Shown here in pieces: positions 21,504-27,202 of a stretch of 64,000 nt of DNA. Origin of the DNA: Hyaloraphidium curvatum SAG 235-1 (Eukaryota; Fungi; Monoblepharomycota); contig JAIVFI010000026.1 of NCBI GenBank assembly GCA_025558095.1, positions 124,001 to 188,000 of the forward strand, given 5' to 3'. A program made the translations under genes and the position numbers. Position 1 is the first letter of the stretch, and every line of letters begins with the position of its first letter. A model generated the notes under the pieces. The model made no database searches, had not been told where the DNA came from, and saw only the letters and a list, made by a program, of their open reading frames with translations.

Positions 21504-24500
21504 ATGCGTGTCTCGGCGTGCGCCGCCATCGCGCTCGCGGCGGCGCTGCTCGCGGCGGCCCGGCCGGCCGCTGCCCACTCCTGGATCGTCTGCACGGATT
21601 ATCGCGAAGAGGTGGGCCGCTACGGTGTCCCTCCGTGCCATTGGGGCGGATTCCGACGCGTTCATGCCCTCCGGCCTCGCTCGCCCGGGTCGCCCGGCCT
21701 TCTCATTCCGGTCACCAGAACGGCTACCTCTGGAACCAGACAAAGTGCGCCGCGTGGCCGCGCGATGCCGCAAACTACGTGTACAACAAGCCTTTCGGCG
21801 CGTCGCTCGGCTACAACCAGCAGAGTGGGTCGCGAGCTGCCGGCGGCCGAGTGACCGCGCTGACCGCGTGCCGCTCCGCAGGCCCCGTGTGCAGGCCGAG
21901 AGATGGCGTCACCGACTGGCCCAAGGCGACCTACCGCCCCGGTCAGCGTGTTTGCCTCGTCTGTGGGTCGCGGCCACCCCCGCTCTCTCCACCCGCCCGC
22001 CTGACCCGCGACGTCCAGGGCCCTCGATGAACCACGTCAACTGCAACATCACCGGCTGCAACCAGTGGCTCTGGGACAACGGCAACCACGTCGAAGCGTC
22101 GCCGTACGAGCTGCCCGACCCGCAGGGCGTCTACGGCACCTGGCCCATCAAGGTCGCCGACATGGGCATCTCGTCGCGCGGGTACGCTTTCACCCCCGAG
22201 TTCCCGCGGCCGGGGTTCCAAAACTGCCCCAATTTTGATCCGTCGGGGGTCGGGAGGGTGTTTCCGGTGGGGGACCAGAGCGGCACCGCGTTCTGCTCGA
22301 ACTGCTTCGAGGTGCCGACCAACATGTCCGAAGGCCTCTACGTCTTCAGGTGATGCTCCCCTCCCCCGAACGTGTCCATTTCCTCTAACCGTGACGCCGC
22401 AGATGGCACTGGGAGTTCAACCCTGGCGAACATTACTACTCATGTTGGGACGCCAAGATCGAAGCCGGCACCCCTCCTCCCGCTCCCACCACCTACACCC
22501 TCCCCAGCACCGCCGCCCCAACCACCACGGTCCCGCCTCCCGCGCCTCCACTAGCCACGGGAGCGACCACCACGGCCGCGCCGGCGGCGCCGACGAGCTT
22601 CCCGGCCAGGTTCAGGTGGCTGCAGTACGGCACCTCGGGATCCAGCGTCAACGGGGAGGTCGAGGTGCTCCCGCTGACGCAGTCGCTGAACGGGTTCACC
22701 GTCGTGTTTGACGTTATCCCCGGCTTCACGGTGCGTCGCTCCGCCCGCGGATCCAGAGGGCGAAAAGCTGACCTCTGCGCTCCGCCTCAGATCGCCACCT
22801 CTAGCATATACAACTGCGGCTCCGTCTCGGCCTCGGGCAGCACAATCAGCTGCGTGCTCAACCCCGGCTCCTGGAACGGCCAGATCGCCGTCAACGCCGT
22901 CGGGCGGGCCTTCGGCTTCTGGGCGCAGCGTAGTTTCACGGGTTCCGGCAGCGTGACTTACCTCCGCGAGGCGGCAACCAACTGGCGCCTCGTGATCGGC
23001 GGCGTCACCTACCCGGTGCCGATGGTAGACCCGAACGATCCCCTCGTACCGACGTTGATGCCGTCGGCGACCGCGGGCACTGGGGGCGCGGCGGTGCCGA
23101 CAACCACGGCGGCGGCGGGAGGGACGGCGCCGACGGGGACTGCGTCGGTGCCGCCGATCAGGCCGGGCAAGTTCGTCGGGGTCAGGGGGACCGAGTTCGT
23201 CATCGACGGCTGCCCGTTCTCCTTTGCCGGCGCCGGTGCCTGTGAGCCCTCCGCGATTTAAAGCCTCGCCCGGCAAGATTTCTGACCCGCGTCCCACCGA
23301 CAGACTACTTCAACTACCAGCCCCCCGCGGTCATCGACGCCGCCCTCGACCTCGCCGTAACCTCCAACCTGCGGGTCATCCGCACCTGGGCCTTTCGGGA
23401 GGAAGCCTGGTTGTCCGCCGCGCCGGGCGGCGGCCTGCGTGTGGACAACTCGACGACGAACGGGGTGGGGGTGCTCGATTACGGGATCAAGGCTGCGAGG
23501 GACAGGAACGTGAGGCTGGTCATGGTGCTGACCAACAACTGGAAGGATTTTGGGGGCTGCGACGTGTGGACCGCGGCCTGTGGGTCTCTGCCGATGGCGC
23601 GCTCCTCCGCCGCCGAAAGCTGATCGGATGCGCGCCGGGTAGATGGCGGCACCACCCACGCGGACTTCTACACCCGCACGCAGGTCAAGGAGGCATTCAA
23701 GGGCTATATCGACATCGTCGTCAACCGCGTCAACTCCCTCACCGGCGTCGCGTACAAGGACGACCCGACCATCATGGCTTGGGTGGGCTCGTCTCCTGCG
23801 CGCCTCTCTGCGTCAGCAGCTCACTGCCCGTCGTCCCGCTCAGGAACTAATGAACGAGCCCCGGTGCCAGAACGGCGGCTCGCTGGGCTTCTCGGCCACG
23901 TGCAACGCAGCGACCATCACAGCCTGGGTCGCCGAGATGTCGGCCTACCTCAAGTCGCGCGTGCCGAACCAGCTCGTGGCCGTGGGCGACGAGGGGTTCT
24001 ACAACGGCGCCGGGACGCTGCCGTACGCGTACCAGAACAACGACGGGGTGGATACCGAGGCGTACCTGGCCCTCAGCTCGATCGACTTTGGTTGGCCCCC
24101 TCCTCCGGCGGGCGGCGCCATCCTCGGCTGACTCCGAATCCGCGCCAGGAACCTTCCACATGTATCCCGCCCCCTGGGGCTCCGGCGCCAACGAGGGCCC
24201 GTGGGGCGTCGACTGGATCCGCGCGCACGGCGCGACGGGCCTGCGGTTCGGCAAGCCGATGCTGTTCGAGGAGTACGGGAGCAAGGACCGCACGCAGAGG
24301 GCGGGGTGGTACGCGAGCTGGATGGCCGAGGTGGAGGCGCAGCCGGCGGTGGCGGGGGATCTGTTCTGGATGATCTCGGGAGGGAACTTCCCCGACTGTT
24401 GGTTCGCACCGACTGCGGAGAGATGGGCCGCTGACGATCTTGGTTCGCGACAGACGACGGGTACACGCTCATGGGCGCCGAGGTCACGACCCTCTTTGCC

Positions 24501-25600
24501 GCCCACGGCGCGCGGATGCTCGCCCGCGGGGCGTGCCTCAACACCACCACCACCTCGACGGCGACCCCGGGCCCGACGGCCACCGGCCCGACCACGACTT
24601 GGGAAACGTCCACCTCCCGCTCACGCACCCGCACGTGGACCCGCACGACGACCACGTCCGGCCCGCCCGCGCGACTCTCGTGGCTGCAGTACTCGGCGGG
24701 CACGACCAACGTCAACGGCGAGGTGCGCCTGGAGAACATCGGCACCACCCCGATCGACGGCTACACCGTGACCTGGACCGTCGACCCCGGGTGGGAGGTC
24801 CGCCCCGAGTGGGTGAGCAACTGCGGCACGTTTTCGCCGCCGGCGGGGACCAACAGGACGGCGGTATGCACGGTCAACGCGGGGGCGTGGAACAGCGGGG
24901 TGCCGGTGGGAGGGATCAACAGGCCCATGAACCTGTTCATGCAGAGGATCGGGTCGGGGAACGGGGCGACGTCGTTCCTGAGGCAGGGTGGGTGGCGGCG
25001 TCGCGGCGCAGCTCGTGGCAGATTGCTCATCCGCGACCTGCAGCCGGGTACGACTGGACGGTCATCGTGGGCGGGGTCAGCTACCCGGCCCAGATGGTGG
25101 ACCCCAACGATCCCGGCGGGCCGGCGGGGCCTGCAACCACGGCGGCACCCCCGGCTCCGCCTCCGCCTCCGCCGCCGACCTCGACTCGCGTCACCACGGC
25201 GGTCCCGACGAGCACGCAGGCCCCGACGACGACGCCGGCTCCCACGACCAGGCCGCCGACGACGACCGTGGCGCCGGCGCCTGCGACAACCACCGTTCCC
25301 GCGGCGGTACCCACCACGGAGCAAGCGTCGACCACCCTCCCCCCTCCGATCACCCTCCTCCGCCGCAGCACCACCATTCGCGCCACCACTACCGTCTCTG
25401 CGACGTGCCCCGACCTCTCCCCCACCCGCGTCCCCGGCCCCGCATCTGTGGAATGCGATCTCTTCGCCGCCGACTGCACGCGGTTCGCTGCGGCGTGCTC
25501 GGCTCGTGCGACGGCAGGGGTGCCGGCTGTTTCGGCGGAGCGTTGCGCGTGGCTGGCGGACTTCTGCGCGGGGTTGGCGGCGAGCTGCCCGATAGCTTGA
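21504..25600 (+). CDS. Secreted multimodular polysaccharide-active enzyme: LPMO-like domain, CBM2-like, GH5 beta-mannanase, CBM2-like, Cys-rich tail
   Basis: Signal peptide ending PAAA then His. About 10 introns. GH5_7-like motifs RVIRTWAF, LTNNWKDFGG, YKDDPTIMAW/ELMNEPRC (acid/base), TFHMYP, KPMLFEEYG (nucleophile). Thr/Pro linkers separate the modules. Confidence 0.85.
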
Positions 25601-25989
25601 GCGGGGTTGGACGGGGATGCGGATGAGGCATAGATGGGCATTTGGGCAGTCCGCGGCAATTGGATTGGACTCGGTCAAAAGAGGCTTATGGCGACAATAC
25701 TGTCTTGGGTCGAGCGTCTCCTTGGGTGAAGATCCGTGGTCCATTCTCGGTCGGAGTTTTCGCGATGAGGTTCTGGAGCGCCCAAAGCTTGGCGGGGAGT
25801 CCCTGTATCGCGGACTGAAGGCCGACTGCTAATGCCGGGGCGGGACAGGCGCAAGACCCCGCTGCCGTCGGATTCGTAGGAGGAAGCGTGTGCGGGACAC
25901 TCGCTTTTGACTACTGTCCAATCTTGATTCCAACACGGCGGACATGCAGACACGGCAAACAGTCATCCCACTCCGACCCTCCAAGCCAC

Positions 25990-27202
25990 CTAGTACCCGC
26001 TCGGCAGCTTCCCCTCCTTGGTGAAGCTCTTCTCCGTCCTCGCCCTCAGCCACTCCCCCGCCGTGAGCACCTTGTCCGCCGGCGCCATGGCGTCCCTGCT
26101 CGCGCCGCTGGCATCCTCGCCCAGCATCGGGCTCGGGATCGGGGACAGCGGGACGTCGAAGCCGGGGCGCAGGAAGTAGCCCACCGAGAAGCGCCGGCGC
26201 TCGGCGTTGCCGGGGATGGGGGACGGGACGACGCGGTGCAGCGTGGAGCGGAGGTAGCCCTGCGTCCAGAACTGTTGCGAGCAGGAGAACAAGGTCAGGT
26301 ACCGCGATGCCGACCCGGGACGAACCCCTCACTTGAAGGATGTCGCCCAGGTTCACGATGCACCCGCCCTCGACCGGCGGCACGTCGACCCATTTCCCGC
26401 CGGGCCGCTGGATCTGCAGGCCCCCCGTGCCGTCCTGGAACAGGCACGTCACGCTGCCCCAGTCGGTGTGCGCGCCGATCCGGATGCCGCGCTCGGCCGC
26501 GCTGCGGGGCTGGCCGGGGGTGCCGGATTCGGGGGGGTAGTGCAGGATGCGGAGGGTGTCGCCGCTGGGGACGGGGTAGGCGTGCATGGGGTCGAAGTAG
26601 AGGTGGCCGCCGGCGGACTCGGGGATCCTGTTCCGGGGCGAGGAAGGTCAGAATGGAGCAGGGCGGCGAGTTGGGCGGACTACCCACTCCATGCCCAGCG
26701 CAATGATCCTCAGCAGCCGCCTCCCCAGCTCATGCATCTCTCGGCTGGCCCTCTCGACCAGCGCCTTCTTGCGGTCCAGGATCTCGGGCAGCGGCCGGTC
26801 GCTACCGGGCTCCCCGGGGACGAACTTGGCAAAGTTGAAGAGCTCCTTGTTGTCCGAAATGCCGCTCGGGTCGAGCGTCTGGCCGCCCACGCCCATGTAC
26901 CCGATGTGCTCGTGGCCCATCGTGTACGGTTTCTTCTGGGTATCGAAGTCCGCGCCGAGGTAGTACTCCTCGGCCAGGGCGAACATGCCCTCGAGCGCCT
27001 CCTTGGACACGCCGTGGCCCTTGACGTAGAGGAACCCCGTCTCGGTGGAAGCGTTGAGGACGCGGCGCGCGATCTCGCGGGCCTTGGCGGGGTCCCTCGC
27101 GGGGTCGAAGGCGGCGATGTCGACGAGCGCCAGCGGGAGGTTGTCGCCCGGAGAGGGCGCGGAGACGTGCGCGGCAACCTGCGCGACGCGGGCGGCGGCC
27201 AT
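25990..27202 (-). CDS. 2-oxoglutarate/Fe(II) dioxygenase (IPNS/DIOX-like)
   Basis: [38 protein letters not shown] (HxD), [22 protein letters not shown]. Two introns. Confidence 0.9.

Follow-up and report, generated by a model that had tools for sequence, protein, structure and literature searches.

We analysed a 64,000-nucleotide (nt) stretch of the Hyaloraphidium curvatum SAG 235-1 genome (contig JAIVFI010000026.1, positions 124,001 to 188,000), referred to here as the window; all coordinates are positions in this window, and the locus lies on the + strand. A 12-exon gene in the window encodes a protein of 1135 residues. In this protein the signal peptide is followed by a domain of about 204 residues resembling a lytic polysaccharide monooxygenase (LPMO), then by a Pro/Thr linker, a module similar to family 2 carbohydrate-binding modules (CBM2-like), a glycoside hydrolase family 5 (GH5) domain, a second CBM2-like module, and, beyond a long Pro/Thr linker, a Cys-rich tail. 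Our analysis indicates that the N-terminal domain is probably an LPMO of an uncharacterised family, carrying a copper histidine brace and acting oxidatively as the first module of a secreted mannanase. We infer copper binding, activity, and substrate from the conserved residues, the predicted fold, and the domain context described below.

In the mechanism we propose, signal-peptide cleavage would expose His1, and its amino group and side chain would form the copper 'histidine brace' together with His80 and the nearby Tyr196 on a β-sandwich of about 200 residues. With the copper reduced to Cu(I), O2 or H2O2 would be used to oxidise a cell-wall polysaccharide at C1 or C4. Anchoring to this polysaccharide would be provided by the two CBM2-like modules, and the exposed mannan would be cut by the GH5 endo-mannanase that is part of the same polypeptide. 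Our best guess for the substrate is cellulose or mannan-containing walls, judging from the CBM2-like and family 1 (CBM1) modules and the fused mannanase.

Predicted copper site and fold

The original prediction placed a histidine directly behind a signal peptide, and this arrangement was recovered, with A-A-A followed by H-S-W in the window. The presequence showed an n-region (MRVS), an Ala/Leu core whose Kyte-Doolittle hydropathy peaks at 2.77 over 9 residues, and a c-region (R-P-A-A-A). A rule-based reading gave a canonical (−3,−1) signal-peptidase site directly before the His. The same layout was seen in 95 of 107 Met-starting homologs, in which H-x-W-x(1,2)-C occurred among the initial 60 residues, in 93 of these 95 as H-S-W; the remaining 12 were mostly fragments without the N-terminal part. 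The homolog His was found at a median position of 19, behind a hydrophobic core, and in 93/95 the residue at −1 was A, G, S, or C.

The family shared the signature H-S-W...K-N-H...W-x-W-x-F-N...Y-x-x-C-[WFY]-[DE]. In an alignment of 72 homologs (A2), His1 was present in 68 of 69 rows, the His of K-N-H in all 71, the Tyr in 68 of 70, and the Cys three residues further on in all 67, followed in the family by [WFY]-[DE]. In the mature numbering of the window copy these residues are His1, His80, and Tyr196; Glu194 precedes the Tyr by two positions (E194-H-Y196-Y-S-C199). The second His and a late strand with an aromatic copper neighbour had both been expected from the window, and both were found with this high conservation. 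The two His residues were 79 positions apart in the window copy and 89 apart in homolog P0010. In the profile alignment discussed below, the Tyr fell on Tyr140 of AoAA11, the axial Tyr of that enzyme.

The fold was predicted for homolog P0010 (Ceratiomyxa, 215 residues) using AlphaFold2 with the 72-row alignment A2, and the model had a mean predicted local distance difference test (pLDDT) score of 92.7 and a predicted template modelling (pTM) score of 0.88. A Foldseek search of the PDB with this model gave 42 matches at E ≤ 1e-3; among the matches listed, all were LPMOs or LPMO-like except one other copper protein, PmoD. When the Foldseek matches were re-scored with VIA-align, the top 50 were all LPMOs, some of them under older names (CBM33, chitin-binding domains, fusolins). 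A VIA-align scan of 48,161 chains, independent of Foldseek, likewise gave only LPMOs or LPMO-like proteins in the top 23. VIA-align Z values of the P0010 model were as follows:

AA10: up to 11.7 (root-mean-square deviation (rmsd) 2.8 Å, 139–140 residues)
AA15: 10.4
AA13: 10.3
AA11: 10.1–10.4
AA9: 9.3–10.3
X325: 8.5 (6ibh)
AA16: 8.1 (7ze9)
AA14: 7.7
Magnaporthe effector NIS1: 7.6
Phytophthora 'Oxidoreductase B': 6.8

Unrelated immunoglobulin (Ig)-like folds showed Z values of 6.6 or less. His19 of P0010 stood opposite residue 1 of the mature LPMO in nearly every row (His28 in CBP21 numbering). Identity to solved LPMOs was 10–20% throughout and Z was 8–12 across all LPMO families; therefore, the fold is that of an LPMO, and no family is clearly closest. 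The LPMO β-sandwich that had been proposed, to be sought with AlphaFold and Foldseek, is clearly predicted for P0010, whose model superposes on solved LPMOs with the His at residue 1.

Several observations weigh against an active LPMO in the window. The fold evidence comes from P0010, which is only about 40% identical to the window domain. The second-sphere Glu/Gln has no one fixed conserved position in the family. The window clade replaces the invariant K of K-N-H by M and I-P-D by W-D, and it carries an inserted DPSG..GDQS loop in place of a near-invariant Cys. As the clade is atypical in having Met for Lys and a loop for Cys, it may have properties unlike those of most family members. In addition, some His-brace proteins with an LPMO fold (X325/Bim1, and AA16 deposited as 'LPMO-like') show little or no polysaccharide-oxidising activity (PMC13353379).

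The domain could have the LPMO fold and bind copper without being a polysaccharide oxidase; it would then handle copper, assist redox reactions, or function as a binding module, comparable to X325/Bim1 and the weakly active AA16 proteins. X325 (6ibh, Z 8.5) and AA16 (7ze9, Z 8.1) were among the structural matches, His-brace proteins without polysaccharide activity are documented in the paper cited above, and the variable second-sphere residue points in the same direction. However, X325 has an extra Asp ligand and a glycosylphosphatidylinositol (GPI) anchor and has no CBMs, whereas the present family keeps the axial Tyr (68/70). The family also shows a context typical of LPMOs, with CBM1 on several members and with CBM2-like modules and a GH5 mannanase in the window gene, which is the architecture of cell-wall-degrading enzymes. 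Retention of the Tyr and the presence of CBMs and a hydrolase partner lead us to disfavour a non-cleaving role, which we consider rather unlikely. An oxidative LPMO module is the reading we prefer.

The H-S-W family and its sequence relation to known LPMOs

A search with exon 4 of the window gene covered 1.84 billion cluster representatives and found two true relatives. P0001 is a fragment of 66% identity from a public run assembly, and P0006, an incomplete protein from the chytrid Nowakowskiella, carries CBM1 at its C terminus. In the run SRR26194948, a 7.7-kb contig contained a gene fragment (1467–1832) 66% identical to window exons 4–5 and with the same D-P-S-G...G-D-Q-S insertion. This fragment, probably from a related organism, was the only other member of the window subclade found.

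Exon 4 was also matched by long bacterial proteins, some of them with HYR-like 4-Cys or Ig-like repeats and type IX secretion system (T9SS) sorting domains, and by a low-complexity repeat protein. We treated these matches as spurious because each consisted of 4–19 short stretches, and any Pfam domains present were unrelated. They covered residues ~47–105 with phmmer E values down to 1.5e-17, and are taken as compositional or Cys-spacing likeness to the G-F-Q-N-C...C-S-N-C-F segment.

Alignment-based iteration resulted in 209 proteins at E ≤ 1e-3. The named sources included Ceratiomyxa (Amoebozoa), Naegleria, Willaertia, and Acrasis (Heterolobosea), and the oomycete Aphanomyces; further sources were the ochrophyte algae Heterococcus and Phaeothamnion, the bryozoan Watersipora, chytrids, and Mucoromycota. 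Among the 120 matches listed, about two dozen carried the Pfam domain of unknown function (DUF) DUF7492, others carried PF27624, and seven had CBM1. The gathering cut-off of DUF7492 (PF24320), 27 bits, was passed by P0009 (41.4), P0089 (39), and P0039 (27.6), and the matches extended from profile position 2, the N-terminal His, to the C-terminal strands.

Many members of the clade had no Pfam annotation at all, and single window exons compared with Pfam, including DUF7492, AA9, and LPMO_10, gave no convincing match. From the lack of a DUF7492 match in the window exons and the many unannotated clade members, the window clade would be a remote branch beyond the reach of the model. The homologs matched by the window exons at ~126 bits nevertheless include P0009, which passes the DUF7492 cut-off.

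The nearest structure clusters in the ESM Atlas were from Mucoromycota, without a Pfam domain (template modelling (TM) scores 0.78 and 0.74), while an Ascomycota cluster with DUF7492 gave a TM score of 0.62. The automatic names of the Mucoromycota relatives were 'Lytic polysaccharide monooxygenase' and 'Chitin-binding type-4 domain-containing protein'. A full-text literature search found no paper describing the family or mentioning DUF7492. The family is thus a widespread eukaryotic one with the LPMO fold, partly filed as DUF7492 and functionally uncharacterised. The original description of a divergent or unnamed LPMO-like family holds as regards LPMO-like and divergent; 'unnamed' needs correction, as part of the family is named through DUF7492 and the automatic LPMO names in the ESM Atlas.

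When the family profile was compared with the PDB, only AA11, one of the auxiliary activity (AA) families, gave significant matches (7p3u, E 1.1e-5; 9exj; 4mah, E 2.7e-4). These matches were located at chain residues ~104–169 and covered only ~45–55 C-terminal residues, with E values of 1e-5 to 4e-4. In them, G-x-Y-T-F-x-W-Y-W-x-F-N...Y-T-x-C of the family aligned with G-K-Y-T-L-A-W-T-W-F-N-R...E138-M-Y140-M-N-C143 of AoAA11, and the Glu of E-H-Y-Y-S-C in the window fell on AoAA11 E138. AA9 chains in the PDB were matched by the family profile at E 0.02–0.2, over the last strands only. For AA13, AA14, AA15, AA16, and AA17 the family profile found no solved chain at E < 0.1, and AA16 7ze9 gave E 0.2. 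AA17 had been considered since one homolog was named 'oomycete secretome protein', and was dropped, as no AA17-titled chain appeared in the sequence or fold searches. The Pfam models LPMO_10 (PF03067) and AA9 (PF03443) did not match any of seven family members, and four of the seven matched DUF7492 only, one of these four above its cut-off.

These results bear on whether the domain is simply a very divergent member of AA11 or AA10 and no new family. The sole significant sequence matches to solved structures are AA11, the best structural Z is from AA10, and relatives in the ESM Atlas bear the chitin-binding type-4 name. Yet the AA11 match covers only ~45–55 C-terminal residues at E 1e-5 to 3e-4, with ~65 further AA11 residues beyond it. 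Moreover, identity to solved LPMOs is 10–20%, Z is about equal (8–12) for all families, seven family members lack a Pfam LPMO_10 or AA9 match, and the window exons match no model convincingly. The His1–His2 spacing of AoAA11 is 59. Because only the last strands align, the AA11 His–His spacing is shorter, and AA11 has ~65 extra C-terminal residues, we did not file the domain under AA11. Membership of an existing family is therefore improbable in our assessment. The expectation that no characterised family would match strongly agrees with these searches, and judged by sequence, the domain fits no characterised AA family with a solved structure.

Gene structure, paralogs, and downstream modules

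The window has a G+C content of ~68%, and the assembly is eukaryotic, with 32 Mb in 55 contigs. The ATG at 21504 is the first of its frame. The first four introns are all GT..AG and 53–107 nt long, and a CTRAY branch motif is present 18–22 nt before the AG in three of the four. Intron phases are consistent, with Ser, Trp, and Arg as junction codons. The spliced exons contain HSWIVCTDYREE, NGYLWNQTKC, YRPGQRVCLV-W-PSMNH, GFQNCP, CSNCFEVP, and GLYVF-R-WHWEFNPGEHYYSCWDAKI, so all motifs quoted originally were found in the exon translations. Each exon was scored separately against the profile made from alignment A2. The five exons were colinear and abutting on this profile and gave ~126 bits in sum, and the junction residues take positions 102 and 194. 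The features of the gene are listed below.

21504–21575, + strand: signal peptide of 24 codons, predicted cleavage after A-A-A (hydrophobic core and −3/−1 rule, also in homologs)
21504–21611, + strand: exon 1, family profile positions 5–29, 21.9 bits
21576–21578, + strand: His1 codon CAC, predicted N-terminal copper ligand (H-S-W start in 68/69 family rows)
21719–21824, + strand: exon 2, family profile positions 34–65, 22.6 bits; GT-AG borders
21882–21962, + strand: exon 3, family profile positions 85–101, 12.3 bits
22019–22349, + strand: exon 4, the domain core, profile positions 103–193, 40.8 bits; paralogs 55–60% identical
22033–22035, + strand: codon of the second His (mature His80, P-S-M-N-H), aligned with the His of the family K-N-H
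22403–22460, + strand: 5' part of exon 5 with the final domain strands (WHWEFNPGEHYYSCWDAKI), profile positions 195–227, 27.8 bits; aligned with AoAA11 E138-x-Y140-x-x-C143
22428–22436, + strand: Glu194-His195-Tyr196 codons, predicted second-sphere Glu and axial Tyr (Tyr 68/70 in the family and aligned with 4mah Tyr140; Glu kept only in part of the family)
22461–22604, + strand: Pro/Thr-rich linker, read directly
22605–23042, + strand: CBM2-like module 1, with intron 22731–22790 inside; a repeat of the second copy
23160–24520, + strand: GH5 endo-β-1,4-mannanase domain (predicted), exons 6–11; exon 9 matches PDB 4qp0, and weak Pfam Cellulase matches occur in the correct order
~23853–23861 and ~24264–24278, + strand: GH5 NEP acid/base motif and FEEYG nucleophile motif, respectively, read directly, positions approximate
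24669–25114, + strand: CBM2-like module 2, with intron 24988–25043 inside; Pfam CBM_2 21.5 bits, E 3e-4
25115–25600, + strand: Pro/Thr linker, Cys-rich C-terminal tail, and stop codon, read directly

The whole coding sequence (CDS) is 3408 nt long (1135 codons and the stop codon at 25598–25600) and has zero internal stops. The proposal of a domain spread over five exons was right with respect to the splicing, but the domain is not a stand-alone gene; it forms the N-terminal module of a gene with 12 exons, which extends to 25600.

The genome contains three loci of the H-S-W family, namely the window copy and two paralogs, on contig C5 (~25800–26600, − strand) and contig C17 (~191240–192120, + strand). 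Both paralogs have an intron after H-S-W-x-x-C-T-D-Y-x-E-x, at the position of window intron 1. In the C5 paralog the equivalents of window exons 2, 3, and 4 lie in a single open frame, and window junctions 2, 3, and 4 are bridged by open frames in the C5 and C17 paralogs. Y-V-F-R-W-R-W is uninterrupted in both, i.e., they lack window intron 4, and in both the D-P-S-G-T-G loop is interrupted by an intron missing from the window copy. Since intron presence and absence differ among the copies of this genome with the frame preserved, we take this as strong evidence that the five-exon spliced reading is right. The GT-AG introns, consistent phases, and colinear profile matches agree with it, as do the paralog frames across junctions 2–4.

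An artefact of the spliced model or a pseudogene, with motifs present by chance, might be suspected since no single exon matched Pfam, but it is highly improbable given ~126 bits colinear over five exons, three conserved genome copies with frame-preserving intron differences, and a 12-exon CDS of 3408 nt without an internal stop.

The C5 and C17 paralogs also share the layout of signal peptide, H-S-W domain, Pro-rich linker, and CBM2-like module, with intron positions unlike those of the window gene. The region downstream of the C17 paralog showed no evident GH5 domain. The Pfam models AA9, LPMO_10, and DUF7492 were compared with the genome exon by exon and gave no match, which is a weak negative, as with two of the three models the controls also gave no signal. 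From the lack of AA9 and LPMO_10 exon matches, the three H-S-W copies may form a large part of the oxidative cell-wall machinery of this genome.

Exon 9 of the GH5 domain, which carries ELMNEPR, showed similarity to the Rhizomucor endo-β-mannanase 4qp0 (E 1.1e-21), and all 12 of its PDB matches were GH5 mannanases. With this similarity to solved mannanases, the NEP acid/base, and the nucleophile Glu motif FEEYG all present, its sequence assigns the downstream domain to the GH5 endo-β-1,4-mannanases. The module of ~125 residues on both sides of GH5 has one intron in each copy, at the same position (after ..L-R-E/Q and before A..). Module 2 matched Pfam CBM_2 (PF00553) with 21.5 bits (E 3e-4), below the gathering cut-off of 24, and the intron-split module 1 did not match Pfam CBM_2. 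After the long Pro/Thr linker, the Cys-rich tail of ~65 residues (25400–25597) contains six Cys and had no Pfam match.

Comparison with known LPMO families

The family occurs in chytrids, Mucoromycota, Amoebozoa, Heterolobosea, oomycetes, ochrophyte algae, and one animal, yet in the databases it is a domain of unknown function. Each of the new LPMO families AA13 to AA17 broadened the known substrates and roles, and several are used in biomass processing. It is possible, and we put it forward tentatively, that the H-S-W family is an active LPMO family deserving its own AA number in CAZy. The window protein would then be a single-chain LPMO–mannanase, oxidising β-mannan, glucomannan, or mannan-bearing cellulose in cis with GH5. 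The domain's covalent attachment to two modules of the cellulose-binding type and a GH5 mannanase leads us to propose plant or algal walls rich in mannan as a hypothetical substrate. We know of no LPMO described with mannan as its main substrate.

According to papers as of mid-2026, the LPMO families are AA9–11 and AA13–18. Compared with these, AA11 (AoAA11 4mah/4mai; AfAA11B 7p3u, 9exj) resembles the H-S-W family in its N-terminal His after a signal peptide and in a β-sandwich that superposes with Z 10.1–10.4 and rmsd 2.8–2.9 Å, at 16–20% identity. It differs in its ~65 extra C-terminal residues (the P0010 model aligned with residues 1–149 of the 186 of 4mah). The profile search left the H-S-W start, K-N-H, and G-F-Q-N-C-P of the family without an aligned counterpart in any AA11 chain. 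The known AA11s are chitin-active.

AA10 (CBP21 2bem, Lmo2467 5l2v, BtLPMO10A 5wsz) provided the best structural matches, with Z 11.2–11.7 and rmsd 2.8–2.9 Å over 139–141 residues from His1. AA10 shares with the family the acidic residue after the late Cys (C-x-D), and the His1–His2 spacing of CBP21 (86) is similar to that of the family. In contrast, identity was only 10–15% without a Pfam LPMO_10 match, and AA10s have an H-G start and mostly an axial Phe, in place of the H-S-W and Tyr of the present family. AA18, the bacterial CelOCE, is unrelated. With respect to DUF7492, neither the window exons taken singly nor the searches of the organism's own genome gave a match.

X325/Bim1 (6ibh) is like the family in its LPMO fold and N-terminal His brace (Z 8.5). 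It has the Asp ligand and GPI anchor and no CBM; the H-S-W family instead combines Tyr with CBMs and a partner glycoside hydrolase. What was already known of the family is the DUF and the automatic database names; what is new here is an LPMO-fold family, functionally uncharacterised, in an unusual single chain with a mannanase.

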